A stretch of DNA of 64,000 nucleotides from Blastocladiella emersonii ATCC 22665 (GCA_025594325.1 JANHCV010000008.1:806001-870000), one strand, 5' to 3'. Shown: positions 6,721 to 61,577, counted from the first letter of the stretch. Made by a program: numbers and translations. The notes: a model not told the origin generated them from the letters alone.

Positions 6721-6748
6721 CACCACCACCACCACCACCACCACCACC
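6721..6748. repeat. (CAC)9 microsatellite abutting the subtilisin ATG
   Basis: Read directly from the sequence. Confidence 0.95.
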
Positions 6749-39726: not shown

Positions 39727-39767
39727 TTTCTAGTTTTGTTCATTATATATTCATTAGTAGCGCTTTA

Positions 39768-42903: not shown

Positions 42904-43362
42904 TTACTCCGCGACCTGCTCGTCCTCACCCGCACCGCCCGCCGCCGCAGCGGAGCCCTCCGCCTTCTGCTCCTCGACTGCCCGGCGCGCGTGCACAAAC
43001 AGCTTGCACACCATCCGCTCCATGGTCTCAATCGACTCGGCCTCCTTGGCGGGCAACTCGACCCCGCTTGTCACCTCGCGGATCGTCAGCAGGCACCCGG
43101 ACGCCGCCTGCAGGTGCGGCAGGATCGACATGGCCTCGTCGGCCGTCTCGAGCGTCTCGCCCAGACCGAGCGCCTGGATCGATGCCAGGTGGCCGAGGAG
43201 CTCGGCGAGCGGGCGGGCGTAGATGCGGTCGCCGCCGGCGGAGGAGGGGGGGTTGGCGGTGGGGAGCTGCAAGGGAGTAGTGGACGGCGTCGCGGCAGCA
43301 GCGGCGGGCTTGCGCTGCGGACGCTTCTTGCGCGCGGCGGCACGTTGCGCGTTGAAGCCCAT
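42904..43362 (-). CDS. Family D member 1 (152 aa)
   Basis: MGFNAQRAAARKKRP start and ILPHLQ core. Confidence 0.7.
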   Translation of the reverse strand: MGFNAQRAAARKKRPQRKPAAAAATPSTTPLQLPTANPPSSAGGDRIYARPLAELLGHLASIQALGLGETLETADEAMSILPHLQAASGCLLTIREVTSGVELPAKEAESIETMERMVCKLFVHARRAVEEQKAEGSAAAAGGAGEDEQVAE

Positions 43363-43570
43363 GGTCTTGGCCGAGTGTCGAGGAGAACGAGCAGGAACGT
43401 CAAGTGCGTGAGCGCGGCGGCCGAAACGAGAAACGAGACGTCCTCGCTGGTGTGCGCCAGGCGCACTAAAAGCATGGCGCACATGTGTGGCGTCGCCTCG
43501 ATCAATTTCGAGTTTGCTTCCCTCTAGCATCCCTTCGATGGGTGATCATAGTGTCCAGTCTCTGATCTAG

Positions 43571-43833
43571 CTAAAAATCTTGAGGTTGTAGACTTGGACT
43601 CGTCCATTTGAAGAGGCGGGGATCGCTTGCGCACAAGTGCTCCGCTTGGATCAACTCTCCCATCACGACGCGCAAGCCGCTAACGCTCTGCGACGTTCTG
43701 CTGATCGAAGCCATGGTACACTCAAGGATGAAACTGCGTTCAATGTCGTCGTGCGCCAACTTGAAGCGTCCTCGCGCGCCCTAGGGAGAGCTGGATCGGC
43801 CATCGTTTCCGCACGCGTTCGGCGTTTGGTCCA
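43571..43833 (-). pseudogene. Possible degraded family D remnant
   Basis: ccATG context followed, one base out of frame, by PNAERVRKRWP, which resembles NAQR...KKRP; a helical fragment lies downstream. Confidence 0.3.
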
Positions 43834-43989
43834 TGGTGATGGCCGTGGCCAGATCTCGTTGCCTTTCCGGGTTTCCTAAGCTTGTGAGGAAGATGCGCTG
43901 TCCACAATCGCCAGTATGATCCTGCTCTCAACAAGCGACCGTAAGCACTGATCTACAAGCTTAGAGTATGCAATCTGAACGTTCATTCA

Positions 43990-44442
43990 TTACTCGTCGA
44001 CCTCAACGATCCGCGTCGTATCGTCACTTGCGCCGCGCACTGGAACCGCCCGGCCCTCCACGATGCGGCGGAATTTGGCGATCAGGTAGCGCATCGACCG
44101 CTCCGTGCCGACTAGGTGGCTCAGATCCGGCGGAGGGATGACGGCGAGCGGGTCGTAGTTGTCGCGCAGCTCCCGAAGCTGCTGGATACACCTGGCCGCG
44201 GACTCGAGGTGCGGCAGCAGGGCCGCGGCTTTCTCGAGCGATTCTGCGGCAGTGGCTGGGTCGAGTTGTTCGATGTTGGTCAAGTGAGCATGCAGCTCGC
44301 CGAGCGGGCGCTGAAAGGCCGCAAACGCGGCCGTGTCTTCGAACCGCTGCGGAGGCGTCGCCGGCTTGCCTCGCGCCTGGGTCCCAGGTTTGCTCCGCGG
44401 ACGCTTCTTCTGGGCAGCGGCACGTTGCGCGTTGTAGCCCAT
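43990..44442 (-). CDS. Family D member 2 (150 aa)
   Basis: MGYNAQRAAAQKKRP start, LLPHLE core, ends DDTTRIVEVDE. Confidence 0.75.
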   Translation of the reverse strand: MGYNAQRAAAQKKRPRSKPGTQARGKPATPPQRFEDTAAFAAFQRPLGELHAHLTNIEQLDPATAAESLEKAAALLPHLESAARCIQQLRELRDNYDPLAVIPPPDLSHLVGTERSMRYLIAKFRRIVEGRAVPVRGASDDTTRIVEVDE

Positions 44443-44681
44443 GGTCTTGGTCAAGTGTCGAGGAGGAAGAGGGGTGGCCGAGGGAGGAGAAGCGAGTCTC
44501 GAACACAAGTGTGACGGTCGACTTGACGCACGCCCACGTGTGTGTCGCAGGCCTGGCGCCCTTTCGCCTCGCCTCGCCCATCGGCGGCTCACGAAGTCGC
44601 GTTCTGGTCACCAAGACGACGATATATACAAACGAGACTCTCGTGTCGAAACACTGCAGACCCACCAGCTCGGCCCGCGCG

Positions 44682-45110
44682 TCACGGCTGGTTCTCAATC
44701 CCGGGCTGCTCGCGGCGCAACCTCTCCATGCCGGCCTTGATGTCCTCGATCTGGTCGCGCAGGATCGCCTCGTGCTCGGTGAGCTGAGCCATCTTGGCGC
44801 GGTACACGGCGGCCTGGGCCGCGGTCTCGCGGCGAGGCCGGGTGGCCGCGAGCGTCTCCATGACGACGTGCATCGACGCGAGCGTCGTCTCCATGGGCGG
44901 CAGCGCGGCTGCGATTTGCTGGTAAGTCATGGTGCACGGAGGCTGGTTCGCGGTGGTCGCCCCGATGGCGTCCAGCTGCTGCACCGCGGCCGTCAGCGGG
45001 CCGACGGACTCGCGCAGCACGCGCGTGTGGTTGGCGGCGGGCGCGGCGGTCCGTGGAGCGCGCGGCGGGCGCTTCTTGGTGGCGGCAGCTTTTTGCGCGG
45101 TGTATCCCAT
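44682..45110 (-). CDS. Family D member 3 (142 aa)
   Basis: MGYTAQKAAATKKRP start, LPPME...RPRR...EHEAILR core, strong GC3 bias. Confidence 0.75.
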   Translation of the reverse strand: MGYTAQKAAATKKRPPRAPRTAAPAANHTRVLRESVGPLTAAVQQLDAIGATTANQPPCTMTYQQIAAALPPMETTLASMHVVMETLAATRPRRETAAQAAVYRAKMAQLTEHEAILRDQIEDIKAGMERLRREQPGIENQP

Positions 45111-45221
45111 TGCAGTAGGTCAAGTTGATTCGTGCAGCAAGGAGAGGGAGGGATCGCTCGAGCGGGGCCGGGCGAGGAACGCGCGCGAGCGATCGGCGGC
45201 TGACGCGCGCTGGTCAGGTGA

Positions 45222-45236
45222 GTGTGGCGCAACGCG
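45222..45236 (-). promoter_or_regulatory. Shared upstream motif (gtgtggcgcaacgcg), D3
   Basis: ~112 bp upstream of the ATG at 45110. Confidence 0.55.
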
Positions 45237-45729
45237 ACGCAGAGGCGCGAAGCGACTCGCGCACGCTCCTGCCGCCCCCGCTATGGATGATATGGGCGTC
45301 CAATGGATCATTTGCTGCCTGCAAACATATTTTGGGACCTCGTGACAAGGTAAAATTACGTCGTTTGCAGTCACGGTCAAGCCGCTGCCTTGGCGCGTGG
45401 TGCTCGTGACGGCTCGATCGCCGGCGCCGACTCAACTCGATCCGTGACGCTCAACAATGAAGCGATAGATGTTGCTGCGATGGTGACTGCGGTCCGCGCC
45501 GTGTCGAGCTGAGGCCACTAGATGTGGAGCGTCTGCGCATCGCCGGCCAGGTTGAGTGATGGTGCCACCTGTTTCGAGCGCGGGAGAGTTGAGCGTCGTG
45601 CCATACCTCGCGCCAACGCGTACAAGTAAGATGCCCGTTGCACTCGCACGCCCGAAGAGAGACGCTAGGACAACTGTTCGTTCAGTAATGCAAGTATTCA
45701 GACCAGCGCACGCGCGCACTTTGGTCCGC

Positions 45730-46248
45730 CTATTCAAGCTCCTCAATCCGGTCCTCGGTCGGCTTCCTGCCCGACTCTGCAGCCTGCTGCTTCTCCACCA
45801 GCATCTTGCGAGCCTTCTCGAGAATCAACCCCATGGCCTCATCCTGCTTGCCCACCCGATTGAGATCGTTGATGTGGGCGATCGCCTTCTGCAACGTTGA
45901 GGGACCAGCAATTGAGACTTGGAGGTACAGGTACTTGCGCTGCAAGTGCGAGACAAGGGCCTCGAGGATTGAAATCATCTCGATGAGCTGCTCGGTCGCT
46001 CCACGCGTCGGCAGCGGTTTGCCGTTTGGGAACAGCGCATCCAGCGCGTGCACATGTCGCATCGTGACGGGGTCGGTTTCGCCAATGAAGCCAGGTGTAA
46101 ACCCGTTTGGGTGAGGCGGCAGGGTGGGATCTGTTGATTCAGGTGCTGATGGTGCAGGAGGTGTGTACTTGGATGGCGTCGGTTCGGGGGCGCGCGGGCG
46201 ACGGGCACGTCGCTTGGTCGCTGCAGCCTTTTGCGCACTGTAACCCAT
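45730..46248 (-). CDS. Family D member 4 (172 aa)
   Basis: MGYSAQKAAATKRRARR start, ends TEDRIEELE. Confidence 0.7.
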   Translation of the reverse strand: MGYSAQKAAATKRRARRPRAPEPTPSKYTPPAPSAPESTDPTLPPHPNGFTPGFIGETDPVTMRHVHALDALFPNGKPLPTRGATEQLIEMISILEALVSHLQRKYLYLQVSIAGPSTLQKAIAHINDLNRVGKQDEAMGLILEKARKMLVEKQQAAESGRKPTEDRIEELE

Positions 46249-46480
46249 GGTGATGATACGTGGTTTGCAGAGAGTAGATGAACGAGAGCTGCGGACCTGG
46301 AGGACAAAGGCTCGACTCAATGCTCACGCACTCCTTGAGCGCGAAAACGCGACGAAGTCATGTGGCTGCGCCACTCCTGATGAGCGCGCGGCGCCTCACG
46401 CTCACCGCGCGATGCCGAACCACGGAGTCCAGTTCAGATCACAAGAACGGATATATTTATGTTGAGCTTCGTGCGTCGCA

Positions 46481-46942
46481 TCAAGCCGACGCACCCGCTG
46501 ACGCGTCGCGGCCCTGAAGCAGCCCCGGGTGCTCGCGGTTCACCTGCTCGATGGTCGCCTTGATATGCGCAATCTGGGCACGCAGGTGGGCCTCGCACTC
46601 GGCGACGTGCGCTACCGTTCTCTTGTTTACGAGCGCCTCCGAAGCCGACATGCGCCGCGGCCGGCATGCGGCGTAGGCCTCCATGATCCCAGGCATCGTC
46701 GCCACTGTTGCTTCCATGTGCGGTAGCCCGTCCACTGCTTGTTCGAACGTCATGGAGTCGTGCGGCAGGTGCGTGTTGGCCGAGGACATGGCGTCGAGAA
46801 ACGCTTCGGCAGCCGCGAGCGGGGCAGCCGCCTCCCGCACGTGCAGCGCGGCCGCGGAGCTCGCGTCTGGCGGCGGGGCGGGCCGGAACGAGCGCCGTGG
46901 ACGCTTCTTGGTGGCGGAAGATTTTTGCGCGTTGTATCCCAT
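46481..46942 (-). CDS. Family D member 5 (153 aa)
   Basis: MGYNAQKSSATKKRP start, LPHME...RPRR core; closest to D3. Confidence 0.75.
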   Translation of the reverse strand: MGYNAQKSSATKKRPRRSFRPAPPPDASSAAALHVREAAAPLAAAEAFLDAMSSANTHLPHDSMTFEQAVDGLPHMEATVATMPGIMEAYAACRPRRMSASEALVNKRTVAHVAECEAHLRAQIAHIKATIEQVNREHPGLLQGRDASAGASA

Positions 46943-47040
46943 TGCAGCAGGTGAAGATGATTTACACGGAGAGGAGCGAGCTCGAGCAGGACGAGCTTGG
47001 GAAAACGCGCGATCGGCGACCGACGCGTCGGTCAGGTGAT

Positions 47041-47054
47041 TGTGGCGCAACGCG
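47041..47054 (-). promoter_or_regulatory. Shared upstream motif (tgtggcgcaacgcg), D5
   Basis: ~100 bp upstream of the ATG at 46942. Confidence 0.55.
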
Positions 47055-48366
47055 ACGAATGGGGCTACTCGACTCAACCCGCGCTTTCCCTGGCAGCCAG
47101 TTCAAGAAAGTAAATATCACTTGATGCATTCGCCGCTTCTTGCAAATGCAGCTAGTGATCCGTGGCCGGCGTTGCCTCGCGTCCAGGGGAGAGATCCCGT
47201 CGTTGCGGTCGCTTGGGCGGTCGCTTCATGACGAAGTAATCGCGTCGACTTTGGTCCTCGACTGATCTCGTCCCACCTGGTTTATCTCGGCAGTCATTTT
47301 CAACCGGAGAGAACCTGGACTACTAGAGATGACGTGCGGGCTCGCTGCTGTCGGACGCGTCCTGATATCATGTGGGTGCGGCGTGACGCGGTGGAGACGA
47401 AGATCGCGATGCGAAACGGGCGGCGACTTGGATGCCCGCCGACTTCCTTCTGCTACTTGCCCAACCGTGTTACACCACAGAACTTCATGTAACTCCATGC
47501 AAGCCGCATATCGGGTTCCGAGTAGCGACCTGATAGCTTAACGCAGTGATCGGCTCGCAGTTTTCGCACCGGGAGGCCCGCGTCGCAGCCGCCCGCCGCG
47601 GCGGCGGACTGTCGAGCGCTTCACAAGCATACATTGCTGAACCTTATGACACTGCTACTTGAATCGACTCGCTCCATCGCTTCATTTTAGACTCGCGCCG
47701 GAACTGAGAGCAAAGGACACGTGCAGCATGTACGTCCTGTTGGACTACGTCTTCGGGCCTTTGCGATCCGGACCCGGTTCGCAAGAGTTCTCAGTGGGTA
47801 AGGAGGCATCGAAGTAGCGCTACATACAGAGCCCGCGTCTCGACCGCTCCCACGGTCGCTTTTTCTCGTGCAGCCGCCAAACCGCTGGCGCTCCGCGGTG
47901 TGTAACCAGTCACCGGACTGTGATGATCATCAGCTTTGGTCATCCGCGTTTCCTGGCTTCTTTGTTCGCTTGTTGAACAGCTGTCATCACCATCACACGC
48001 TGCTAGCTGCACCTCGTTCCGATGTACCCCACGCTGCTTGAATGATGCTTCCAAGGCGCATTATCCAGCGCCACCTCGTGCCTCAGTGCTTTGTCGAACG
48101 GGAGACAGCGTGTCCTTGCGTCAGCGCACTGCTCGCAACAGCAAGCGACGCAGGCCGCGAAGCTGTACACTCATCGAACAGGCTTTACTCGCAGAAAGGT
48201 TTACACTTGCTCAAAGATGACGGGAGCGACGGGCACGGCTGCACTTCAGATCTTGCTTCAAAGCGGGTACTCGGATTGATCAATCACAACTGCAGATGCA
48301 TTCAATCACACACTCGCGCGCGCGTGATCGCTACCGCGCGCTTCTCTTCAATGCGCTGTCACCGCC

Positions 48367-48888
48367 TTACACGCGCCCGCGCTGGCGCTGGCGCGCGGCA
48401 AGCGCTTGGCGGGACCGCTCGATCGACTGGCGCGAGGTGCGCTCCTGGAGCAGCAGCTGGTTGAGGCAGTCGGTCAGCGCAAACGCCGTCTCCACGGTCG
48501 CGACCCCGAGCGTCCACGACTCGAGCGTCTGGCGCTTCTGCTGTACGTGCGCGAGCAGAGCCTCCTGGTGTGTGATCAGCACGGCAATGTCCTGGGCGGT
48601 GAGGTTGCGCGGCGCTGCACCGGGCCCAGCGCTGGCCCCAGTGATGGCGTTGATGGCGTTGACGTGGTGCAGGATCACTGGGTCGTTGTCGGCATCGAGT
48701 GCGGCCTCAACGCCGTAGAGCGGACTCGTGGGCAGGGCCGCCGACCATGCGGGCGTGACTGGCGCACAGCCCGGCGGACGAGGACCCACGGCAACGCGGG
48801 CAGCCGATGCGGGCGGAGCCGACTCGGAAGGGCGCGGGCGGCGCGCGCACCGCTTTGCGGATGCATTCTTTTGCGCGTTGAATTCCAT
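48367..48888 (-). CDS. Family D member 6 (173 aa)
   Basis: MEFNAQKNASAKR start; RPPGCAPVTPAWS...LYGVEAALDAD block shared with D10 and D11. Confidence 0.75.
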   Translation of the reverse strand: MEFNAQKNASAKRCARRPRPSESAPPASAARVAVGPRPPGCAPVTPAWSAALPTSPLYGVEAALDADNDPVILHHVNAINAITGASAGPGAAPRNLTAQDIAVLITHQEALLAHVQQKRQTLESWTLGVATVETAFALTDCLNQLLLQERTSRQSIERSRQALAARQRQRGRV

Positions 48889-49005
48889 GGTGTCGATGCG
48901 TTGTTTGTGGTTTGGGTGGCGGAGAGAAGGAATCGAGCGGGTCGCCGATTTCCTCGACAAGTCGGCCGAACGCGGAGTTGACTCACGCGGCTGGCCCACA
49001 CGCGC

Positions 49006-49024
49006 GAGTGTGGCGCAAAACGCG
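49006..49024 (-). promoter_or_regulatory. Shared upstream motif (gagtgtggcgcaaaacgcg), D6
   Basis: ~120 bp upstream of the ATG at 48888. Confidence 0.5.
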
Positions 49025-49099
49025 TTCGGCGATGGGAGTGACGGGAATTGTGGCTGGGCGCGACGCGTCTCATGTCTCGCATCCCCAAGCGACGCTGAC

Positions 49100-49293
49100 G
49101 CGTCGCTGTTCAGAACGGCATCTTTACGAATGGAAGACACAACGCTTCCCTTGTCAACTTTATGCAACGCGTCCGACACCGCTCCAACTTGCTGATTTAC
49201 GACTGGTACCTTTAAGGCTGATAGCGCGACCGCCAGCGTGCTTCGCCAAGTGTGCCGTTAGTAGGCGAAGGCCCTTGCCGGGTTGAAGCCCAT
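49100..49293 (-). pseudogene. Family D 5' remnant (MGFNPARAFAY*)
   Basis: ccaaggccATG context like the ccaagaccATG of D1 and D2; TAA after 11 codons. The 3' extent is approximate. Confidence 0.45.
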
Positions 49294-49933
49294 GGCCTTG
49301 GCCGATTACGATACGTCGGCAACAATGATATCGAGTAGCGCAGCTTCGCGAACGAACGAGCAACACGCTGCTCATCGCGCGAGCGCGATCAAGCAGGAAG
49401 CGCGTGCTACGCGTGTTTATTTGGTGGTTTGATCCTCGTGCGAGCGCATCGCGACATACGAATGAGATCAACCGATCCGAGTCCCGCATGTTGGTTGCTG
49501 GGATCGGGCTGGATCGCTGTCCAACAAATTCGGGACAGGGAGGAGCAGCTCTAAGTGATGGAGCACACCCGCGCCTGTCGTGCAAGGCCGCGCTGCAGGC
49601 GTTGAGTACTTTCTCCAATAAATTCAAGCCATCTCGGTTACGTTTTTAGCGCAAGCGAAGGTCTCAGTCGACTACGAGATGGGCGGACGAAACCGGTGCC
49701 ATTGATGGAGCAAAATTACCTGTTTGTCCCGAGCCTGATTTGAGGAGAAGACTACCCTGCGAATCCCTGCCCGCTTCAACGTAGGTGAAGGACGAGACAA
49801 TCATGCATGTTACAGTGTGCTATCCATTACAAACAACAAGACCATGACGTGACACGGGAACGGCTTGCGACGGATGCAGAAGGTGTGCGCGTCACGAGCA
49901 CCATAAAGTCAGGGATTCGACTTAGTTGATCTC

Positions 49934-50383
49934 CTAGATGCGGCTACTGTCGCCGTCAGGGCTGGAGCCATCTCGGAGCGGGAAATCCCGCTCGGCCACC
50001 CGTCGGCGGAGCTCGACGAGGTTCTTGCGTATTTCCTCCTCGTTCTTATCATCTTCGATAAAAGCAGTGGCGAAACGGGGGTCGAAGCGTGCCAACTTAA
50101 CGCGGATTTGCCGCATGGCCTGTGCATGTGCCAGCGTGCCCTCGAGGTGTGGAATAAGTGCGGCAACGTCCTCCAGCTTCAAGTCCCGAGCATCTTCGGG
50201 CATGAGCTCTCGGAACGCTGCGTGGTGGAGGCTCACCTCGGGGCTCATTCGAAAGAAGACCCCGGCGGCACGGTCAATGCATGCTTCGGCGGGGCCACCA
50301 GGCGGCATCGGCGCAGACTTGCTTGCGGGCTTGCGCCGAGCACGCTTCTTAGCGGCAGCTGCCTTTTGCATGTTGTTATTCAT
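49934..50383 (-). CDS. Family D member 7 (149 aa); C-terminal motif cut by a TAG
   Basis: MNNNMQKAAAAKKRARR start, LIPHLE core; the tail reads SRI*EIN*. Confidence 0.7.
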   Translation of the reverse strand: MNNNMQKAAAAKKRARRKPASKSAPMPPGGPAEACIDRAAGVFFRMSPEVSLHHAAFRELMPEDARDLKLEDVAALIPHLEGTLAHAQAMRQIRVKLARFDPRFATAFIEDDKNEEEIRKNLVELRRRVAERDFPLRDGSSPDGDSSRI

Positions 50384-50748
50384 GGCCTCCAGTCAGGAGG
50401 TGCGAGTGTGGAAGTCGGCGGTCGGGAGCTGGGAGCGCCCGCGAACAGGTCGGCAAAGAGCTGAAACGACTGCCCACGAAGCACGTGTGTGGCGCAGGCG
50501 CGGGCGCGGGCGCGACCACGACGACGCGCGTCGACGCGCGAGACACCGTACTCGGCGTTCTCCAATGGAGCGCGCTCATTCTAGGAGCGCGGATCACTGC
50601 CGTGATTAAAAATGCGTTTAATATAGTCACGCTTCACAACTGCTTGCAGAACGCGCAAGCCCTCGCTTACAGCAAGTCGCTGGCTCATGGTCACGCAAGA
50701 AAATCGAGCGAAAACGCCGACTGCATGTATCCCAAACATTGAGCCATA

Positions 50749-51137
50749 CTAAACTTCCGTGATCCGCTCGTCTTTTGGCTCTACGGTGCCAGCAGCGACG
50801 GCGCGCTCACGCTGACGTTCCACAAGCGATTTTTGAAGCGCAGCGCCTTTTGAAGCGCAACGACCATCGATTCCGCAGACTGTTGCTGCACCAGCGTCTC
50901 GTTCAGGGCCGCGGTCAGCGCAAGCGTTTCCTCCATCGTCGACTTTAAGTGCACCCCTGATCCCGGGTTCCACGCCAAGAGCGCCTCGTGCTTCTGCTGG
51001 GCGAGATCATCAGCTTCCAAATCACTCGAGCTTGTGATCCGTCCATCTTTGGGCTCGGCGTCGGCCGCCTCCGCGCGCTTGCGCATTCGTATCGCTAGCG
51101 TCACTTGATAATGTTTGAGAGCCGACTGCGTGGGCAT
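50749..51137 (-). pseudogene. Two adjacent family D 3' remnants, both frameshifted
   Basis: Removing a 17-nt duplication restores VALQKSLVERQRE...EPKDERITEV*. Restoring one G at ~51031 gives EPKDGRITELE*. Confidence 0.6.
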
Positions 51138-51446
51138 GTTTCAAGCAACATCTAGTGTAAGGCTGCGAGCCAACAAGACCACTTTGCTCACCATCGAGTC
51201 CCAGTCCGTCGCGGTTGGCGGAGTCCACACGATAATAGTTTACCTCTTGCGCAGTGAGTGGCGTAGTACACGGTAGCCCGAGTTCGCTTGTTCAACCAGC
51301 GGGGCTCGGGCCAGCAACTAAGCGACCTGATAATCGCAGTGCCATCTGGAGCTCACATGCTTCGCCTCTCGCCCTCAAGATTGAAAGTACGTCAAGGCCT
51401 TACATTTCGTGACACAAACGGACAGAAGGCTCGCGCAGCAGCAAAG

Positions 51447-51935
51447 TTACTCGAGTTCGAGGATGCGGCCCTCGTCACTAGACCCAGCACTGCCGCCCTG
51501 CTCGCCCTCCTTCTCGAGTCGCGCCGCCAGCTCCTTGCGGAGCCGCTCGACGTTGGCGCGCATCTCCGCTTCCTTGGCCGCCGTTGTGGCCAGGTACGCG
51601 TTGTACTCGACCAAATCGGCTGCCGACAGGTTCCGCGGCCGCATGTCGCGGAACGCCTGCTGCATGGCCTGCATGTGCTTCACCACGCCCTCGTAGTGCG
51701 GGATCACCTGGACAAGTTCTTCCGTCGTCGCATGGCGGTCGCGGGGCGTGATGGCGCGGAGGGCCTTGAGGTGCTGCTCCATGCCGTGGGTCGCCACGTC
51801 GATGGGCGAAATGGCGGACGTATGGTTCGACAAAACCGTGGTCGCGGCCGTCGCCTTGGCCGCGGGAGTAGCAGCGGTATTGTTGCGGCGGCCACGCTTC
51901 TTGGCGGCGGCGGCTTTCTGCGCGCTGTAGCCCAT
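51447..51935 (-). CDS. Family D member 8 (162 aa)
   Basis: MGYSAQKAAAAKKRGRR start, VIPHYE...MRPR core, ends DEGRILELE. Confidence 0.75.
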   Translation of the reverse strand: MGYSAQKAAAAKKRGRRNNTAATPAAKATAATTVLSNHTSAISPIDVATHGMEQHLKALRAITPRDRHATTEELVQVIPHYEGVVKHMQAMQQAFRDMRPRNLSAADLVEYNAYLATTAAKEAEMRANVERLRKELAARLEKEGEQGGSAGSSDEGRILELE

Positions 51936-52865
51936 GTTTCGGATGGATTGCACCAAGTGATCTACGACAGCACTGTCAAGTGGGGCGGAGGGGCGAGAGG
52001 AAGAGGAAGCCCGACGCTGGCACGGCGGAAGTCGCTGTGCGAATTTTCGGCGCTGGCTGAGGATCACGCGAGTGGCGCAGCCACGCCCGATCGCGTCTGC
52101 TGCTTGCTGTGCGCGACCAAGGTGTCTGCCTTGTTCGTACTGGGCGTTGGTACACGTAGCCGCCTGGCACAGCAAAATCATCAATAATCTTTGTTTCCGA
52201 TGCTGGAAACTCCATCCAAGTTGTCAGGATTTCAGGGCCGTTCTCGCACGTTTGAAGTTTCGCGTTTCCTGCCGCCAAAGATTGTTGTGTACAAGCACCT
52301 CTGCTTTCAAGCGTCCGTCGTCGATCGACGGCTCACCCCCGCAAAGGTTCACATCACGCATAGAATTTCTCATGCGAGACTCCTCACTTGTCTTGGATTT
52401 TAGCCACGGCAACCAACAGCTTGTGAGCTCGCGTCGTCACAAACTGATGGCTGTACTGATCGCCCAACGTTCGCGGGTTTCGCCTTTCATTGACACCTTT
52501 CAAGCGAGCATCAGGTTCATTCCACACGTGCTTAGTAAAACGGATCACCTTTGCGTCCCAAGAAACGCTGCTTGTGGGAGTTGGCGCCAAAACGCGCTTG
52601 GGATTCCGCTCTTTCGCAGCTCATTTTGCAAGTCCCTCATTGCTGCTGCGTGAAAACACGCGTCCTGATCAGCAGTCAGCATGTCCTGTGGCTGTGCCGT
52701 GCGTTCCGAACGTGGTGGTGCTGAAGTTGTGGCGTAACGCGTCCAATATGAAAGGGCACCGATCGCTTGGTAAAGTAATATCTTGAGAGCGAGTAGACGC
52801 TGAGCACCTTGCGAGCAATCAGTTTTAGCTGAACCGCATGTATCTCCGAGGCACGAATCGCGCGC

Positions 52866-53348
52866 TCACTGCTCATCATCGCCACACTCCTCAATGCTAC
52901 CGCCGCCGCCAGTGGAACCGGCACCAGCAGCAGCCGCGGACCCAGCGCCGCGACCAAAGACGCGGTACATCATCTCGAGGTTGGCGCGCATCAAAGCCTC
53001 CTGCTCGATGAGGTCCGCGAGGGACGCGTTGAACTGGGCCACTTCGGCGGCCGTGGCGCGCTGTGGGCGGATCGTATACATCTCGTGCCGCACACGCTGG
53101 ATGTTTGTCAGCATCGCCTCGACGTGCGTAATTACCTGGAACGGGTCGGCTTGAGGACCGCCGAGAACGCTCTGCATGACGAGGGAGCGGATTCTGTCAA
53201 AGTTGTGCTCAAATTCGTCGCTGGCCGCGTCCATGGTTGCAAGCGCCTTGCGAACCTCAGGCGCAGAGGTCGAGACTTGCGAGCGGACCGCCGGCCGGCG
53301 CCGCGCGCGCTTCTTGTTGGCGGCAGCCTTTTGCGCGTTGTATCCCAT
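52866..53348 (-). CDS. Family D member 9 (160 aa)
   Basis: MGYNAQKAAANKKRARR start, ITHVE...IRPQRAT core, ends SIEECGDDEQ. Confidence 0.75.
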   Translation of the reverse strand: MGYNAQKAAANKKRARRRPAVRSQVSTSAPEVRKALATMDAASDEFEHNFDRIRSLVMQSVLGGPQADPFQVITHVEAMLTNIQRVRHEMYTIRPQRATAAEVAQFNASLADLIEQEALMRANLEMMYRVFGRGAGSAAAAGAGSTGGGGSIEECGDDEQ

Positions 53349-53447
53349 GGTTTCACTGGATCTTGAATAATGAAGGGGAGCGATAGTCGCGAGGAGACCC
53401 TCTCGCGCGAAAGGCGCGTCCCTTCGAGGGTGGGAGAAGGGACACGT

Positions 53448-53462
53448 GAGTGGCGCAACGCG
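53448..53462 (-). promoter_or_regulatory. Shared upstream motif (gagtggcgcaacgcg), D9
   Basis: 100 bp upstream of the ATG at 53348. Confidence 0.55.
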
Positions 53463-53918
53463 CGACACTTTCTCCACGCGCCACTTCGCATCGGCCGTTC
53501 GATCACAAAGCGACGCGAATCCACTGCTAGGGCGCCGTTCATACCCGGCTAGCTCTCGTGTAAATGCATGGCCGTCGTGCGGTCGCCTAGGTTTGTGCGA
53601 AAATGGAGTGAGTTCAGCTCACCTTGCGGCATCAGTGGACGCGATAATAGATGTAACCTTGAGCGGTACACGATGATGTTGGTGTTCCTATTAACGTGAT
53701 CGATGCATATGCTGTTACCAGCGATAGAGAGTGTATTGAGCTGTACTACACGCGACTCGCAACAGACGCAACGGGGTTCCACACAACCTTGCGCAGTTCA
53801 TCAAGCGCTGAGCGCCGCCGGACCTTCTCGTCCGCGACGTTGTCGATGCATGCATTGTAACGCAACATGTCGGCGGCTGTCGCGCACACGGCATGTCTGG
53901 CCAGTCTACGATGCGTTA

Positions 53919-54639: not shown

Positions 54640-54775
54640 GGTGGGAGACTGCAGGGAGACAAAGCGTCGTGCGGGTCGGGCGGCGGGATGACGCGCGGGG
54701 AAGCGAATCAAGTGTGGCGCCGCCGGCGTGATCGGTGCTCTCTTCCTCAAACATGTATCGTTCTCGCTCTTTGCA

Positions 54776-56392
54776 ATGAATACACGCAGATCAACTCCAT
54801 GCAATGCACTTCTTGCTATATCGCCGCCCGATCCTGAGCCCGACCTGGGGCCGGCCGTCGCCGCGATCGATCGCGTCACCGCCGCGGGGAATCTCGGGCA
54901 CTTGCCCGCCGTCGACCTTGCCGTCCTTGAGCAAGGGGCACTGTGCAACCTCATGTCGCGCCGCATCGGCTTGATTCGCGCTGCCTTGCGCCCGCGTATT
55001 GCGCCGCCGGGCGAGCCTATCTTGGCCGAGCCGATCGTGGAAGCGTCCCTTGGCCTGTTTCACGCCCGTGCAGCGTACACTGGGGTTGCGCAGCTTGCTG
55101 TCCATGACGCTGCGGTGCACCCTACGCATGTACGGGAGCTTGAACCGCCGCCTCGCGTTGAGTATCCGCCCCAAACCGTTGATGGTCCGCAGACCGCAGA
55201 CCTGTTCGAGACTCGTGTTCCCGCGCGCCCGCTCGCAGTCGAGACCGCCCCGCTTCATTTCTCGCCCGAACCGCGTGCTGCTCCGGAGTCTTTGACGCTT
55301 CCAGCTACGAAATCCGACTCGACTCGCACGCACTCCCAATCACTACCCGCAGCTTGCGCGACACTCGCAGCCATGATCCGCGCTGTTGAGCGAGGCGATA
55401 CCGGAACGGTGACGGCCACCGTCGACTTTGCCGAGGTCGCCCGCGCCGCCGAATCCATGCTCAAGATCCTCGCCAACGGGGTCGCACCAGGCAAGCTCGC
55501 TGACGCGTTGATTCGCTCACACGACCGCGTTCCGCCCGCCATTTACCGCGTCTTCGCGATCGCCCTGTCGCCCGAGATGCCCGACACCGCAGCACGGACC
55601 GCCTGTGTTTCCGTCTTTTCATATCCGCGCGCCTTCTGGATCAAGTTTTACATAAAGCCCACGCGCGGCGAGCATCTCCGCGTCAAGCGGCTCGTCGCGG
55701 ACGCGACCAAGGCCGTGGGCTTGAATGAATTCGATTACGCGGATCGCACGAGGCTGCCGCACATTAAGGCGCTGTTCGTTGACCGGCTCAACTGGGTCGA
55801 TCCCGAGTCGCTTGCCCAGCAGATCAACGATCCCGCGTGTACGCTCGAGAATCTTTTGAAGATTGCCGCGTACTCGTACGCGCCAAACGCGCCGTCGATT
55901 CCTGCCCGTAGCTCGGCGCCATGGGGGCCCGCCCACGCTGCTGTTGAAACGCACGCGGTTGACCACGTACGCCCGTCAACTGCGGACAACTTGACCCACC
56001 TCCACGCCCATCGGCAGCAGGCCATTGGGTGCACTTACTGCGCCGTCCTCAAGAGCCACCGCATCCCTCCGCACACGGAGACTGACTGCGTGCGGCTCTT
56101 TGACGCGCAGGAGATGGGAACTCGCATTGGCAAGGCGGCCGCTGCGATGGCGCAGCCGTTCAAGGTCGTTCCGCTCCACGGCGGGCACGAGGACGCGGCG
56201 CTGGTGACGCTCGCGACGCAATTGGGGTCCGACCATGCCAATCGGTTTGTGGAACTCGAGGACCGGCGGGCACTCGCTGCGCTGCACGCGCTGATGCGGA
56301 TCCCGCACGACGCAACGCGGCACGACCGGATCCGGCGGATCTTTGCGTGGGCGCACCACTCTCAGCAGAAGCAGATGATGCAGTCTACTTAG
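54776..56392 (+). CDS. Family C copy 2: Gag-like, CxxC-x10-H-x4-C
   Basis: Within the 554-aa ORF 54728..56392. EQGALCNLMSRR, VPPAIYRVF...EMPD, LPHIKALFVDRL and CTYC...HTETDC (56030-56089). Confidence 0.6.
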   Translation: MNTRRSTPCNALLAISPPDPEPDLGPAVAAIDRVTAAGNLGHLPAVDLAVLEQGALCNLMSRRIGLIRAALRPRIAPPGEPILAEPIVEASLGLFHARAAYTGVAQLAVHDAAVHPTHVRELEPPPRVEYPPQTVDGPQTADLFETRVPARPLAVETAPLHFSPEPRAAPESLTLPATKSDSTRTHSQSLPAACATLAAMIRAVERGDTGTVTATVDFAEVARAAESMLKILANGVAPGKLADALIRSHDRVPPAIYRVFAIALSPEMPDTAARTACVSVFSYPRAFWIKFYIKPTRGEHLRVKRLVADATKAVGLNEFDYADRTRLPHIKALFVDRLNWVDPESLAQQINDPACTLENLLKIAAYSYAPNAPSIPARSSAPWGPAHAAVETHAVDHVRPSTADNLTHLHAHRQQAIGCTYCAVLKSHRIPPHTETDCVRLFDAQEMGTRIGKAAAAMAQPFKVVPLHGGHEDAALVTLATQLGSDHANRFVELEDRRALAALHALMRIPHDATRHDRIRRIFAWAHHSQQKQMMQST

Positions 56393-56585
56393 AACTAGAT
56401 CCATCGTGCTCGTTTTGTTTGCAAGGTAGGGTGCGATCGGGTTGAGATTCACCTCATTCATCGCTCCTTCGCGCGTCTTCATGATGTTCAAGCGCAACGG
56501 TCGATGTATCCTAACATGAACACGCGCCTGCTCCATCGACGCCACGCGCGCACCTCCTCCTTCTCCTCGGCGCGCATCCAGCAGC

Positions 56586-57134
56586 CTACGCGCGCCCGCG
56601 CTGGCGCTGCCGCGCGGCCAGGAACGCGCGCGTCCGCTCGAGGCCCTCGCTCATCTCCCGCTCCTCGTAGACCAGCTGGTTGAGGCACTCGGTCTGCGCG
56701 AGCACCGCCTCGATGGTCGGGACGGGCGGCGTCCACGCCTCGAGCGTCTTGCGCTTCTGCTGCACGTGCGCGAGCAGCGCCTCGCTGTGCGACATCAGCG
56801 TGGCGGCGACGTCGCTCGGGGCGGGGAGCCGCGCCGCCGAACCGCGTCCAGCGCTGGCCTCACTGATGGCGTTGATCGCCTTGACGTGGTACAGGACGAC
56901 AGGGTCGTGGTCAGCATCGAGTGCGGCCTCAACACCGTACAGCGGGCTCGTAGGCAGCGCCGCCGACCACGCGGGCGTCACAGGCGCGCAGCCCGGTGGA
57001 CGAGGACCCGCGGCAGCGCGGGCAGCATCCGACGCGGATGGAGCCGGCGCGGGGTCGGTCGACGCGGCCGCGCGCGGAGGAAGGCGACGCGTGCGCTTCT
57101 TGGTCGATGCGTTCTTTTGCGCGTTGAAGCCCAT
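56586..57134 (-). CDS. Family D member 10 (182 aa)
   Basis: MGFNAQKNASTKKRTRR start; close paralog of D6. Confidence 0.75.
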   Translation of the reverse strand: MGFNAQKNASTKKRTRRLPPRAAASTDPAPAPSASDAARAAAGPRPPGCAPVTPAWSAALPTSPLYGVEAALDADHDPVVLYHVKAINAISEASAGRGSAARLPAPSDVAATLMSHSEALLAHVQQKRKTLEAWTPPVPTIEAVLAQTECLNQLVYEEREMSEGLERTRAFLAARQRQRGRA

Positions 57135-57153
57135 GGTGTCGATGCGTCGTCGT

Positions 57154-57222
57154 TTGTGTGGTTTGGATGATGGGGAGAGAGGGAGCTGATTGTGTGGTTT
57201 GGATGATGGGGAGAGAGGGAGC
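57154..57222. repeat. 33-bp direct duplication (36-bp period) in the D10 5' region
   Basis: ttgtgtggtttggatgatggggagagagggagc x2. Confidence 0.9.
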
Positions 57223-57330
57223 AGAGCGCGGGCTCCGGCCGGTGTTTGAAGGAGTCACGAACGGTCGGCGCCGGCGTGGGCGGTGCTCCCTCCCTCACAA
57301 CATGAAGGATCGCCGCTTGCCGCGATGGGG

Positions 57331-57560
57331 GCTCCATGCAACCTGCTTCTTGCTCTATTCCAGGTTGATCTTGAGGCCGGGCTGGCTCCGGCCGACGTTG
57401 TGCTCGATCGCGTCACGGCGGCACGGATCCGCGGCGAGTTGTTGACGCAGCGAGCTAGCCGTTCTTGAGCAGGGCATGCCTCGTACCCGTCTCGCGCGTC
57501 GTTCCGGCCTGGGCGAGGCTGGTTCGCGCTCGTACATCGCACCACGCACATCTGTGTCAC
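57331..57560 (+). pseudogene. Family C 5' fragment
   Basis: PCNLLLAL...LDRVTAA...VLEQG...RR.GL...IAP matches the N-terminus of copy 2 (PCNALLAI...IDRVTAA...VLEQG...RRIGL...IAP), with a frameshift. Confidence 0.65.
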
Positions 57561-57998
57561 CTGAGTCGGTCGTTGAGGTGACATCTAGAGAGCCGGCCCG
57601 CTTGAACGGCGCCCAGCCCCACGGGCTCTGTCGCAACCGCGCACACGTCCTCGGTGGTGGCCGCTCTACCACTCGCCCTCACACGCGACCTCGGGCGACA
57701 TTGAGGCACAAAGCACGCTTGTTACGATCTTGAGCATCCGTGCGCTGGTCCAACTCTTTCACCCCGACGAAGCGCTCGTTCCCATATGACTGCCGTGCTC
57801 TCAATCTTTCATGTGTGGCAGTCATCGCTCGCGGCAAGCGTTCCGACCTGCAAGCGCTCGCGTCCGCATGGTCGGATCTCACAGCTCAGAGAACAGCCCT
57901 TTGCTTCAACAACGCAACGTCGAACTATTCGATCACACACTGTCGTGCACACTCGGACGCGGACGCACGTCCCACGATCTCGATGATCGGCCGGCAAC

Positions 57999-58430
57999 CT
58001 ACCCGCGCCCGCCCGTCATAGCCGCCAGCGCGCGGCGCGCCGTCTCGATCCCCTGTCGCATGGCGTTCTCGTGGCGCAACGTGTGGTTGAGGGCGTCCGT
58101 CAGCGCGATCATCGCCTGGACCGGGTCCACGTTCCCGGTCGGCCGCCACGACTCGAGCGTCTGCCGCTTGCGCTGCACGTGCGCGAGCAGGGCCTCCTGG
58201 TGCGTGATCAAGGAGCGGCAGTCTTGGGCCGTCATACGGCGCGGGGTCGGCGGGTTCGCCGAGGCACCGGTGATGGCGTTGATGGCGTTGACGTGCTGCA
58301 GGATTACCGGGTCGTTGTCGGCGTCCAGCGCGGCCTCGACGCCGTACAGCGGGCTGGTCGGCAGGATCGCCGACCACGCGGGCGTCACGGGCGCGCAGCC
58401 AGGCGGGCGTTGGGCGGAGGGACCGGGCAT
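57999..58430 (-). CDS. Family D member 11 (143 aa), lacking the N-terminal NAQK/basic motif
   Basis: The ATG context (gcatcaacaccATG) matches D6/D10 but runs straight into the RPPGCAP block. Confidence 0.65.
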   Translation of the reverse strand: MPGPSAQRPPGCAPVTPAWSAILPTSPLYGVEAALDADNDPVILQHVNAINAITGASANPPTPRRMTAQDCRSLITHQEALLAHVQRKRQTLESWRPTGNVDPVQAMIALTDALNHTLRHENAMRQGIETARRALAAMTGGRG

Positions 58431-58581
58431 GGTGTTGATGCATTGCGAGTAGAGTGGGTGAGGGGCAGGAGAGAAGAAGCTTCAACGGGGTGCTCGAGCG
58501 AGTTTCGCCCAACCGATCGAAGACGTCGTCGTCGACTCACACAGCTGACTCACACAGCTGACCCACGCGCGAGTGGCGCTG

Positions 58582-58653
58582 GGGCTTGACGACGGGGGTG
58601 GCAGGATTGGCAGCCGGGCTTGACGACGGGGGTGACAGGATTGGCAGCCGGGC
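58582..58653. repeat. 34-bp tandem duplication with one mismatch, upstream of D11
   Basis: gggcttgacgacgggggtg(g/a)caggattggcagcc x2. Confidence 0.9.
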
Positions 58654-59141
58654 GCGACGCGTCTCATGTCTCGCGCTCTCGCGGGACGCCGGCACTTCAC
58701 GGCGCATTCGGTTAACTATTAAGTAAGCCCTTCGATTCAGTTCGCAGACTCGATTCACGACACCGGCCGCCGTGACCCTCAACTCGCTTCATAGCCAGCA
58801 GGAGCTACATAATGTGAGCATGCGATATGAGCTTGCATAGGATTGCTATCCTCGTCTGGCTCTTGAGTACTCGGTGATGGGGCCATCATGGCCGCGATTG
58901 AGACGGCACTCCACGAAACTGCAACATTTCTCAGCATCCCTCTACTTGTCGTGTGATTCGCACTCTGATGAGCCCATTCGTGCGGTTTTCGCCCAGCTCG
59001 ATGAGCCTGTGCGGCGGGAGAGTGATTTACACTTGCAGCACTGGACCAGGACCTGCGAGTACACGTTCACGTCTCGCTTCGGAGTCGATAAGGTTTGGTT
59101 TCGAACGAAAACGAGAGGTATTTATGGTGAGGTAGCGGACC

Positions 59142-59675
59142 TTACTCGAGCTCAACAAACCGGCCGTCGCTTGACCCCGCAACACCCGAACGCGGAATCG
59201 GGAACGGCGCGCCGCGCTCGACAAAGATACGCTCGAGCTCGTCAACTGCGCGATTCGCGTCCTCCTTGGGTCCGAACATCGCGCTCACGAACGTGCGGAG
59301 CGTATCGAGGATGGAGTTGAGCGTCGCCTCGTTCCGGGTAAGTCGCGCGAGCGATGCGTGGTACTTGGCCATGTCGGCCGCGGTCGTACGCTGCGGGCGC
59401 ATCGAGCCCATCTCCTGGCGCATGCGCTGGACGTCGGCCAGCATCCGCTCGAGATTTGACATCGCCGTGAGCGCCTCGGCGGGGTCCGCACCTTTCGTGC
59501 ACCGCTCGGCCATGGCGAGGAACTCATTGGCCTGCTGCTCCAAGTCGCTCTTGACGGCGTCGGCGGCGGATAGCGTCTCGCGGAGCTGCGGCGCCGACGA
59601 GGCCGAGGCCCTGGCGGCCGACCAGCGCTTGGGGCGCTTCTTGGTGGTGGACGCTTTCTTCGGATCGAATCCCAT
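59142..59675 (-). CDS. Family D member 12 (177 aa)
   Basis: MGFDPKKASTTKKRPKR start, ends SDGRFVELE. Confidence 0.75.
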   Translation of the reverse strand: MGFDPKKASTTKKRPKRWSAARASASSAPQLRETLSAADAVKSDLEQQANEFLAMAERCTKGADPAEALTAMSNLERMLADVQRMRQEMGSMRPQRTTAADMAKYHASLARLTRNEATLNSILDTLRTFVSAMFGPKEDANRAVDELERIFVERGAPFPIPRSGVAGSSDGRFVELE

Positions 59676-59791
59676 GGTTGCCTCAAGTTGCATCAAGTGT
59701 GAGCGAGCGAAGCAGCCGTTCGGGATTGCGATGACACTGCGCGAGAGAGGGCGGGTCGAGTCGCGCGTATGCGCGATCGAAGCGCGCACGT

Positions 59792-59806
59792 GAGTGGCGG
59801 AACGCG
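59792..59806 (-). promoter_or_regulatory. Shared upstream motif variant (gagtggcggaacgcg), D12
   Basis: ~117 bp upstream of the ATG at 59675. Confidence 0.5.
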
Positions 59807-59974
59807 ACCTTCAGGGCACTCCCGACAGCTGTCAAGTGCAAGGGTTTCTCGCAGGACTGGCTGTTACACTGGACAAGGACCCGCGGTCGAGCGTCCGTGT
59901 CAAGTTTCGGTGTCAAACGAGTTTTTTGTCGAACGTAGACGGGGATTTATTCATGACTGATGAGAAAGAGGTCC

Positions 59975-60508
59975 TTACTCGAGCTCAACGAAGCGGCCAT
60001 CGATTGACCCAGCACCACCCGAACGCGGAATCGGGAACGGCTCGCCGCGCTCGACAAAGATGCGCTCGAGCTCGTCAACTGCGCGATTCGCGTCCTCCTT
60101 GGGTCCGAACATCGCGCTCACGAACGTGCGGAGCATATCGAGGTTGGATTTGAGCATGGCCTCGTACGCAGCAAGATGCGCGAGCGATGCGCGGTACTTG
60201 GCCATGTCGGCCGCGGTCGCACGCTGCGGGCGGATCGCGCCCGCCCCCTGGCGCATGAGCTGGGCGTCGGCCAGCATCCCCTCGAGATTCGACATGGCCG
60301 TGAGTGCCTCGGTGGGGTCCGCGCCGTCCCTGCACCGCTCGACCAGGGCGAGGAACTCCGTGGCCCGCTGCTTCAGATCGGTGTGCGCGGCGTCGGCGGC
60401 GGAAAACGTCTCGCGGATTTGCGGCGCCGACGGGGCCGATGCCCTGGCTGCCGACCAGCGCTTGGGGCGCTTCTTGGTGGTGGACGCTTTCTTCGGATCG
60501 AATCCCAT
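59975..60508 (-). CDS. Family D member 13 (177 aa), tandem duplicate of D12
   Basis: Same length and termini as D12; ends IDGRFVELE. Confidence 0.75.
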   Translation of the reverse strand: MGFDPKKASTTKKRPKRWSAARASAPSAPQIRETFSAADAAHTDLKQRATEFLALVERCRDGADPTEALTAMSNLEGMLADAQLMRQGAGAIRPQRATAADMAKYRASLAHLAAYEAMLKSNLDMLRTFVSAMFGPKEDANRAVDELERIFVERGEPFPIPRSGGAGSIDGRFVELE

Positions 60509-60634
60509 GATTTAGTTCCGTTGCATCAAGTCTGGGCTCTTGACGAAGACGTTTGGGTTGCAATGGCACTGCGCGAGGGAGAGCGGGTCGAATCGCGGGT
60601 CGGCGCTGCGTCAACGCGTTCGAAGCGCACACGT

Positions 60635-60649
60635 GAGTGGCGGAACGCG
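60635..60649 (-). promoter_or_regulatory. Shared upstream motif variant (gagtggcggaacgcg), D13
   Basis: ~127 bp upstream of the ATG at 60508. Confidence 0.5.
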
Positions 60650-61025
60650 GGGCTCCGCGCGAGCAGTCCTCGAAGCAGCAGCAACGCATGGCACGGCAAC
60701 TCCGAGCTCAGCAACACACCCGTCCGCCGTTTAAGTTAGCACCAGCGGAGAGTTCACGCGAAGTTGAGCGCGCTCGAACGCTTCAAACGCACGATTGAGC
60801 AGGTCTGCGAGGGGCTCGGAGGAAAGCGAAATCTGCGTGCATCGACTGCAAGTCGCCGTCATTCGAGTGGCGACGCGGCTCGTCCAACCTTTGTCATGCA
60901 TGACATATGCACGCGTGCGTTGTTCCGCGTCAACCACTGCTGTCCACTCATCTAATCCTCAAACAGTGCGCCCGGGATCGCCACGATATGAAATGTATTG
61001 CAAGCCTACTCGAGCGCAGCGCAGC

Positions 61026-61577
61026 TCACTCGATCTCAACAATGCGATTGTCGTCGCCAGTCATCTCCGCACCAGCGCTCAGGACAGCAACAGAAACAGC
61101 GCCAGCCGCGAGCCTCTCCGCTTCGTCATTCTCCTTGCGCATGGCCATCCGGGACTTGATGCGCGCAATGAGGATGTTCAACTGCTCCTCCTGGTGCGCG
61201 AACTTGGCCAGGCCCGCGTCGTAATTGGCCATGCTAGTCCTCGACGGCTTGTGGGCGAGGAGCGTCTGTCGCAGCGCGCGCAGTTCCGCCGCCGCGGCTT
61301 CCATGTGCGGCAGCTCTGCAACCTTCTGATCGAGATTCGAGTCGCTGTGACGGACGCAGCGCTCGCGAGTGGCGACTAGGGCCGTCATGTGGTCCTTGGT
61401 GCGGTCGATGGCCGCTATCACAGCCCCAAACTCGTCAAAGGGGCCCGTGACAAGGCCCGCCGTCACCACCAGTGCCCCGCTTGAAGCCAAGCCAGACGCT
61501 GGTCCCGCCCCGGCATGCGCGGTGCGCCGCGCCCGCTGCTTCTTCTTGGCCGCGAGTTTCAGTGCATTGGATCCCAT
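61026..61577 (-). CDS. Family D member 14 (183 aa)
   Basis: MGSNALKLAAKKKQRARR start, LPHME core, ends DDNRIVEIE. Confidence 0.75.
   Translation of the reverse strand: MGSNALKLAAKKKQRARRTAHAGAGPASGLASSGALVVTAGLVTGPFDEFGAVIAAIDRTKDHMTALVATRERCVRHSDSNLDQKVAELPHMEAAAAELRALRQTLLAHKPSRTSMANYDAGLAKFAHQEEQLNILIARIKSRMAMRKENDEAERLAAGAVSVAVLSAGAEMTGDDNRIVEIE

Follow-up and report, generated by a model that had tools for sequence, protein, structure and literature searches.

A 64-kb stretch of the Blastocladiella emersonii ATCC 22665 genome (JANHCV010000008.1:806,001–870,000, assembly GCA_025594325.1; henceforth referred to as the window) contains an array of small genes, family D, which is an undescribed multigene family restricted to one species. 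The 14 window copies, named D1 to D14 in window order, lie at 42904–61577, and three copies outside the window bring the family to at least 17. From features of their sequences, the encoded proteins are tentatively read as nuclear adaptors under common control. All genes of the array would be turned on together by a shared bipartite promoter, a basic N-terminal head would carry the protein into the nucleus, a predicted three-helix bundle would hold a partner, and docking into a carboxylate-clamp tetratricopeptide repeat (TPR) protein would be the task of a C-terminal peptide.

The array was defined by open reading frame (ORF) listing and translation, which gave 14 intronless minus-strand ORFs of 142–183 amino acids (aa) counted from the ATG, the same number, strand and size range as in the first-pass annotation of the window. 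A family profile hidden Markov model (HMM), run against the window translated in all six frames, matched exactly these 14 frames with expectation values (E) of 1e-34 to 1e-51. A fifteenth family frame was absent from the six-frame translation, the next-best HMM match having an E of 1.8. The window is located in the middle of a 1.8-Mb contig and not at a contig end. Short-read unitigs from three DNA runs, which derive from the same source sample and are not independent of the assembly, covered 56.4–62.0 kb almost without differences; the differences observed were one substitution and one deletion of a single nucleotide (nt), both from run X3, which had low depth. D12 and D13, a near-duplicate pair, were placed on separate unitigs, which argues against an assembly artefact. 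Read-run look-ups with a 2.2-kb stretch and with one gene listed three DNA runs of the source sample and no RNA run.

Relatives were sought with the family profile in a word-indexed homologue search of 5.8 billion proteins and in an exhaustive hmmsearch of 1.84 billion (1.84e9) cluster-representative proteins. Neither search found a relative outside B. emersonii ATCC 22665 or matched a characterised family, and the 11 true matches of the exhaustive search all came from GCA_025594325.1. Two marginal matches (E ~ 1e-4), to a phage tape-measure-like protein and an algal repeat protein, were rejected as relatives. No Pfam model passed in a scan of 10 members, which returned sub-threshold noise only; the best score was that of one member to the spectrin-type model PF24615 (18.2 bits against a cut-off of 28). 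With no match to Pfam, to the sequence of a solved structure or to a specific fold, the initial impression that family D belongs to no known family was upheld.

Of the copies outside the window, one stands alone amid housekeeping genes on a different contig (L001:10001–10519), and two belong to locus L002 on the same contig as the array, at L002:10001–10483, ~ 128 kb further along, and at L002:7006–7485. The NCBI annotation contains 11 gene models in the array, omitting D7 and D14 and joining D5 and D4 via a predicted intron into the 238-aa H9P43_006790. Since it misses three of the 17 copies (D7, D14 and L002:7006–7485) and fuses two more, further unannotated copies elsewhere are likely.

The protein architecture was derived from an alignment of 17 members and an AlphaFold2 model of D8 with a mean predicted local distance difference test score (pLDDT) of 79.9 and a predicted template modelling (TM) score of 0.61. 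Core blocks were modelled at pLDDT 83–97, exceeding 90 in the best-modelled core. The model places a disordered basic head (residues 1–19) and a disordered Pro/Ala-rich linker before a three-helix bundle (helices at residues 44–62, 71–97 and 105–147), which is followed by a disordered Gly/Ser/acidic stretch and the C-terminal motif. The near-invariant Glu of an (L/I)-P-H-x-E motif is predicted to start helix 2, and an R-P-x-R motif to form the loop between helices 2 and 3. Mean pairwise identity was 0.55 at the N-terminus and 0.31 in the tail, compared to 0.21–0.26 in the helices, and the hydrophobic pattern of the ~ 100-residue bundle is retained despite fast sequence drift. Both the roughly three-helix core and the contrast between fixed termini and a fast core, as given in the first-pass annotation, were thereby recovered.

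Foldseek searches of the PDB, AlphaFold DB clusters and viral models, together with an Atlas shape search, returned generic bundles only (best E 0.008–0.08), comprising spectrin repeat, MIT, syntaxin Habc, BAG, bMERB, CorA and tape-measure segments, and an ESM Atlas feature search was uninformative (best score 0.66). The BAG, MIT and Habc likeness raised at first annotation is, on the modelled structure, of this generic kind. The BAG domain (PF02179) gave no hmmscan match in 10 members at E up to 1, and 5aqs chain D ranked 25th in Foldseek with an E of 0.51. The MIT domain (PF04212) gave no Pfam match, with 3eab and 4zey found by Foldseek at E 0.17–0.36 and TM-scores of 0.6–0.7 normalised by target and 0.38–0.40 by query. 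A spectrin repeat was rejected as well, the curated cut-off not being reached and the top Foldseek match, utrophin 3uum, having an E of 0.076 and TM-scores of 0.34/0.41. For syntaxin/SNARE Habc, no SNARE motif, transmembrane segment or Pfam match was present, and Foldseek E was 0.3–0.5. A sequence match to the DC-SIGNR neck (3jqh, E 1e-7) was discarded as the sum of three weak 23-residue coiled-coil repeat matches, each with an E of ~ 1.

Ratios of nonsynonymous to synonymous change (dN/dS) were estimated by NG86 with bootstrap limits in eight pairs, a pairwise counting that has low power on saturated paralogues. Whole-gene dN/dS was 0.32–0.69 in the eight pairs, with the bootstrap upper limit below 1 in five and ~ 1.0 in two. 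GC content at the three codon positions of family D was 0.69 (GC1), 0.52 (GC2) and 0.81 (GC3), compared to 0.59 in intergenic DNA. Judged from these codon comparisons, the D genes are under selection. The head gave a pooled dN of 0.35 against a dS of 0.95 (omega 0.37). Codons of the shared head and tail residues vary freely among copies, so the head is not explained by recent gene conversion; the exception is the young pair D12/D13, in which the first 18 codons are identical.

A dN/dS significantly above 1 was observed in no region or partition of the NG86 pairs, helix 3 included, and exposed-like core columns displayed no consistent excess over buried-like ones, a comparison that is noisy and based on a partly circular partition. 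The diversifying interaction surface proposed in the first-pass annotation was not borne out by these results, and the sequence comparisons indicate that the fast core is explained as well by weak constraint. They also bear on whether family D arose from conflict, with a helical surface diversifying in allorecognition, in antiviral or anti-transposon defence, or in drive/suppressor loci. Constant ends around a variable middle, tandem amplification, copy turnover and species restriction would suit such an origin, as would the neighbouring transposon relics and other expanded, species-only families. Given the lack of a ratio significantly above 1 in low-power pairwise counts and of consistently faster exposed-like columns, and with no domain typical of fungal incompatibility, killer or defence systems found by the Pfam scan or Foldseek, a conflict-driven family is considered unlikely.

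The basic N-terminal module, noted from the start as a shared feature, occurs in every window copy except D11 (13 of 14), and 10 of the 14 begin with MG(Y/F). The head consists of 17–19 residues, MG-aromatic-N-A-Q-K followed by KKRxRR. Among the 16 head-bearing copies of the family, 15 carry a net charge of +6 to +8 over the first 22 residues, D6 having +4, and K-[KR]-x-[KR] occurs in 12. A classical monopartite nuclear localisation signal has the form K-(K/R)-x-(K/R) within a basic cluster, and from this likeness we infer that the head is such an import signal. The N-myristoylation pattern PROSITE PS00008 comprises Gly2, a small uncharged residue at position 3 and Ser, Thr, Ala, Gly, Cys or Asn at position 6; an N-myristoylation signal was rejected for family D, where Gly2 is present in 13 of 16 heads but position 3 is mostly Tyr, Phe or His and position 6 is Gln or Lys. 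Most start contexts read ACC-ATG-G, which may add pressure for Gly at position 2.

At the other end of the protein, R-[I/F]-x-E-[L/V/I]-[E/D] terminates nine of the 17 copies, among them six of the 14 in the window, in line with the acidic tails recorded at first annotation. In all nine intact tails the motif forms the last 5–6 residues before the stop codon, and it is kept at three separate loci. The pattern was found at the C-terminus of nine out of 683 stop-to-stop ORFs of at least 80 aa in 105 kb, every one of them a family member. The D6, D10 and D11 proteins end in a basic QRQRGR stretch in place of the acidic motif. Hsp70 and Hsp90 carry the C-terminal peptides IEEVD and MEEVD, respectively, and one family D copy ends in IEELD, one residue off the Hsp70 peptide. 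Docking into a TPR protein is proposed because the tail has the layout of these chaperone ends. SUMO- and Atg8-interaction motifs have no need for a C-terminal position; five of the nine tails fit the SUMO-interaction core and three the Atg8-interaction core. The tail is always at a free C-terminus, so the carboxylate is probably recognised, which favours a carboxylate-clamp reader over either of these motifs. By analogy with the chaperone peptides, docking in a carboxylate-clamp TPR protein is conceivable, if rather doubtful.

Co-regulation is suggested by a promoter element, GCGCCAC(A/T)C(A/G)CGTG or a close variant, located 104–149 nt before the ATG in 11 of the 14 genes, so that the shared promoter motif first assigned to most genes was confirmed. 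The 12-mer core had 13 matches in the window, compared to 4.0 expected, and none of 100 shuffles reached 13. An upstream CGCGT(T) box is usual, giving CGCGT-N9-CACGTG, with N11-CACCTG in D3 and D5; the spacer of 9–11 nt contains GCCAC, and the second box, CACGTG or CACCTG, is E-box-like. The site of D9, CGCGTT-GCGCCACT-CACGTG at 53443–53462 on the minus strand, is an example. The remaining sites are at 43480–43491 (D1), 44535–44546 (D2), 45215–45236 (D3), 47033–47054 (D5), about 49003–49016 (D6), 50482–50493 (D7), 52065–52076 (D8), 58566–58577 (D11), 59787–59806 (D12) and 60630–60649 (D13). On this sequence pattern, family D probably shares one regulator. A second element, CACTTGA, was observed 14–47 nt before the ATG in six copies, namely D1, D2, D3 (as AACTTGA), D8, D12 and the L001 copy (29 nt upstream of position 10001). 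Its background frequency is 0.06 per 200 nt, and it could serve as an element of the start site or core promoter.

The D-type promoter core (GCCACACACGTG) also occurs in perfect form far from the D genes, at 3605–3616 on the plus strand and 22395–22406 on the minus strand, the latter (22381–22414) with CGCGT upstream. These distant copies presumably front other families. Looser combinations of both promoter boxes are borne by nearby ORFs with a CCHC motif, described below.

Several observations weigh against nuclear adaptors of the kind proposed. For helix 3, seven of the eight pairs gave a dN/dS of ~ 0.7–1.1 (the intervals being wide), and near-neutral change would be unexpected in a surface that binds specifically, except where every copy binds a partner of its own. 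A ratio near 1, which the first-pass annotation had held, for untranscribed ORFs, to count against its reading of the genes, was thus not found for whole genes (0.32–0.69) but was approached by helix 3 alone. The predicted fold is ordinary and too generic to inform on function. An intact tail is missing from eight of the 17 copies, and at least some members can therefore do without it. The terminal residue is Glu in eight of the nine intact tails and Asp in one, while exchanging the terminal Asp for Ala abolished binding to PP5 in a study whose peptide library kept Asp constant (PMC11259706). In addition, head and linker are without an acidic residue for 30–45 residues in several copies and could be an organelle presequence.

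This last point, together with a head and linker rich in Ala, Arg/Lys, Ser, Thr and Pro, would be expected of small proteins targeted to the mitochondrion or a zoospore-specific compartment by a cleavable head. The five or six consecutive basic residues (KKRxRR) suit a monopartite nuclear signal better, the head contains few hydrophobic residues and AlphaFold2 predicts almost no helix in it; organelle targeting therefore appears highly improbable.

The main rival to nuclear adaptors is a weakly constrained orphan family without a sharp function, an appreciable possibility though still on the unlikely side. Such a young family would have little or no specific function, with an inherited promoter and copies that are tolerated and subject to near-neutral drift and turnover; its conserved ends would reflect only needs of translation, stability or harmless localisation. 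The helix 3 ratios point in this direction, as do those of the helices altogether (0.34–0.98), the headless D11, the stop in the D7 tail and the decayed remnants described below, and the lack of relatives in other organisms. GC3 of family D is below the 0.95 of a housekeeping-type window gene, the subtilisin-like gene at 6737–7942, the array occupies a lower-GC accessory block with transposon relics, and the ACC-ATG-G context may partly account for the MG start. Whole-gene dN/dS is nevertheless significantly below 1 in most pairs, head and tail are retained as amino acids across a dS of ~ 1, a confident common fold was predicted from just 17 sequences, and the C-terminal motif is preserved at three loci, all of which argue against this rival.

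If the nuclear adaptor reading is taken further, a constant import signal and an Hsp90/Hsp70-like peptide would flank a variable three-helix reader, and the paralogues would bring different nuclear targets to the same TPR partner, or compete with chaperones for it, at one stage of the zoospore life cycle. The partner could be a phosphatase, a ubiquitin ligase or a co-chaperone. This fuller scheme, drawn by analogy, is a long shot; if true, it would mean that the EEVD docking code had been put to diversified use outside the chaperones within one lineage.

The individual window copies, all on the minus strand, differ in their tails, promoters and degree of damage. D1 (42904–43362, 152 aa; HMM E 1.9e-39) combines the basic N-terminal module with a variant acidic tail ending EDEQVAE, and D2 (43990–44442, 150 aa) ends in RIVEVDE, with one extra Glu. 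D3 (44682–45110, 142 aa) and D5 (46481–46942, 153 aa) are without the acidic tail. Between them, D4 (45730–46248, 172 aa), the copy fused with D5 by NCBI, ends in RIEELE and has no clear promoter element. D7 (49934–50383, 149 aa), uncalled by NCBI, has a stop codon within the tail motif (RI-stop-EIN). D8 (51447–51935, 162 aa), the member modelled as a three-helix bundle, ends in RILELE, and D9 (52866–53348, 160 aa) in the variant acidic IEECGDDEQ. D12 (59142–59675) and D13 (59975–60508), both of 177 aa and both ending in GRFVELE, are tandem duplicates. D14 (61026–61577, 183 aa), also uncalled by NCBI and without the promoter element, ends in RIVEIE and is arranged head-to-head with the CCHC-motif ORF at 61976–63637.

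D6 (48367–48888, 173 aa, ending QRQRGRV), D10 (56586–57134, 182 aa) and D11 (57999–58430, 143 aa) form a subgroup with an extra Pro-rich segment of ~ 35 residues before helix 1. D10 has no promoter element and contains a short tandem duplication in its 5' region; the HMM match of D11, the copy without the basic module, begins at profile position 19. The Pro-rich segment (48700–48800, 56950–57050 and 58300–58420) had a dN of 0.04–0.10 against a dS of 0.47–0.58, making it far more conserved than the remainder, and may be an extra short docking motif.

Decayed copies were sought by tblastn, which yielded mostly low-complexity Pro/Ala matches; two weak candidates were retained, both on the minus strand. 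One, at 50841–51269, resembles the helix 2–3 region of a D6-type gene (tblastn E 0.003–0.009; hhalign E 0.002, probability 13%), and the other, at 53755–53883, resembles helix 3 (tblastn E 0.009–0.1 to D13, D8 and D9).

The tree of the family contains four well-supported groups, namely D1 with D2, the two L002 copies, D4 with D6/D10/D11, and the L001 copy with D12/D13, and a fifth, less well-supported group of D3, D5 and D14. D1/D2 and D12/D13 are both neighbours and sisters, and the D6 subgroup is scattered across 10 kb. Copies also disperse, since the solo L001 copy on the other contig is nested within the D12/D13 clade. D12 and D13 share 83% DNA identity over 59039–59806 and 59867–60649, promoter included. 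In DNA comparisons of paralogues, similarity was limited to the coding region and at most 100–150 nt of flank, and no repeated non-coding flanks or terminal repeats were seen around the D genes. The duplicates carrying their flanks, the loss of the N-terminal module from D11, the stop inside the D7 tail motif, the two weak remnants and the dispersed L001 copy fit the birth-and-death evolution first suggested for the array, which the sequence comparisons support.

The array is bordered on one side by EMC3 (41822 onward, Pfam E 1e-47). GC content within the window ranges from 0.57 to 0.72; a block of 0.68–0.72 at 24000–42000 stops at ~ 42 kb, and the DNA of the D array (42000–64000) has a GC content of 0.57–0.65. 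ORFs of 550–760 aa that share an invariant C-x2-C...H-x4-C motif, and in some cases contain long Arg/Ser tracts, occur on the plus strand of the window at 673–2520, 54728–56392 and 61976–63637. Further CCHC-motif ORFs are located in L002 at 3–1310 on the minus strand and at 1671–3143, 3195–5063, 7445–9721, 10793–12970 and 13621–14714 on the plus strand. Pfam and PDB sequence matches for these ORFs were absent, and a homologue search with the CCHC family was swamped by Arg/Ser-rich words, returning only the window's own protein. A Gag-like label was unsupported, the AlphaFold2 model of the C-terminal domain being poor (pLDDT 62) and without a capsid match. The accessory part of the window also contains a relic of a DDE_Tnp_4 (Harbinger/PIF-type) transposase (19964–20653, minus strand; Pfam E 1.5e-11) and a near-identical inverted pair of 260–300-aa ORFs without a Pfam match (4849–5757, minus strand, and 17831–18610, plus strand). 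A PIF1-like helicase fragment beside the CCHC and D genes of L002 (16736–17926, plus strand; Pfam E 2e-6) is a possible Helitron relic.

These neighbours raise the possibility that family D is accessory to a mobile element that has been domesticated or has decayed, with the MG start and basic patch acting like a retroviral matrix protein beside the CCHC ORFs. In L002, two D genes alternate on the same strand among six CCHC-motif ORFs near the PIF1/Helitron-like fragment, and two CCHC-motif ORFs lie inside or beside the window array. Kinship of the two families was rejected (hhalign probability 0.2%), the CCHC model supplies neither a capsid match nor adequate confidence, and neither Pfam nor PDB sequences match it. 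A CCHC neighbour is missing for 12 of the 14 window copies and, within 10 kb, for the L001 copy. Membership of family D in the retroelement Gag/matrix proteins was itself rejected, in the absence of a Pfam match, of repeated flanks or terminal repeats, and of anything other than generic bundles in the viral fold library; the aromatic residue after Gly2 and the Gln at position 6 also misfit the N-myristoylation pattern. A mobile-element origin is accordingly very unlikely, and the co-occurrence of D and CCHC genes is read as shared residence in accessory, lower-GC DNA.

The array is a compact case of a family born and expanded within one early-diverging fungal lineage, in which selection maintains two short end motifs around a drifting folded middle. 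Should the ends act as docking signals, as in the nuclear adaptor reading, the family would illustrate how newly arisen proteins connect to long-established machinery (nuclear import, TPR clamps) and would offer 17 natural variants for study. If it is largely neutral, it would serve as a calibration case for orphan-gene annotation.

Two groups of known systems offer a comparison. Like the generic bundles of 3uum, 3eab, 4zey, 1ez3, 5aqs chain D and bMERB, the predicted family D core is an up-down-up arrangement of three helices over ~ 100 residues, with Foldseek probabilities up to 0.98 and target-normalised TM-scores up to 0.70. Query-normalised TM-scores are only 0.3–0.5 and sequence identity is 7–20%, and the basic head and C-terminal motif are not features of the spectrin, MIT, Habc, BAG or bMERB families. 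Unlike EEVD-type peptides, the family D tail usually has Val or Leu rather than Glu as its fourth-last residue, and its sixth-last position is a conserved Arg. In common with them, it is placed at the extreme C-terminus after a disordered acidic/Ser-rich stretch and is hydrophobic at the second- and fifth-last positions, with Glu third-last and an acidic residue last. EEVD-like ends of non-chaperones are known to bind TPR clamps directly, as observed for ELP1 (LSLLD) with PP5 and a tau proteoform with CHIP (PMC11259706), and Rpn13 binds SGTA via an EEVD-like end (PMC5101480).

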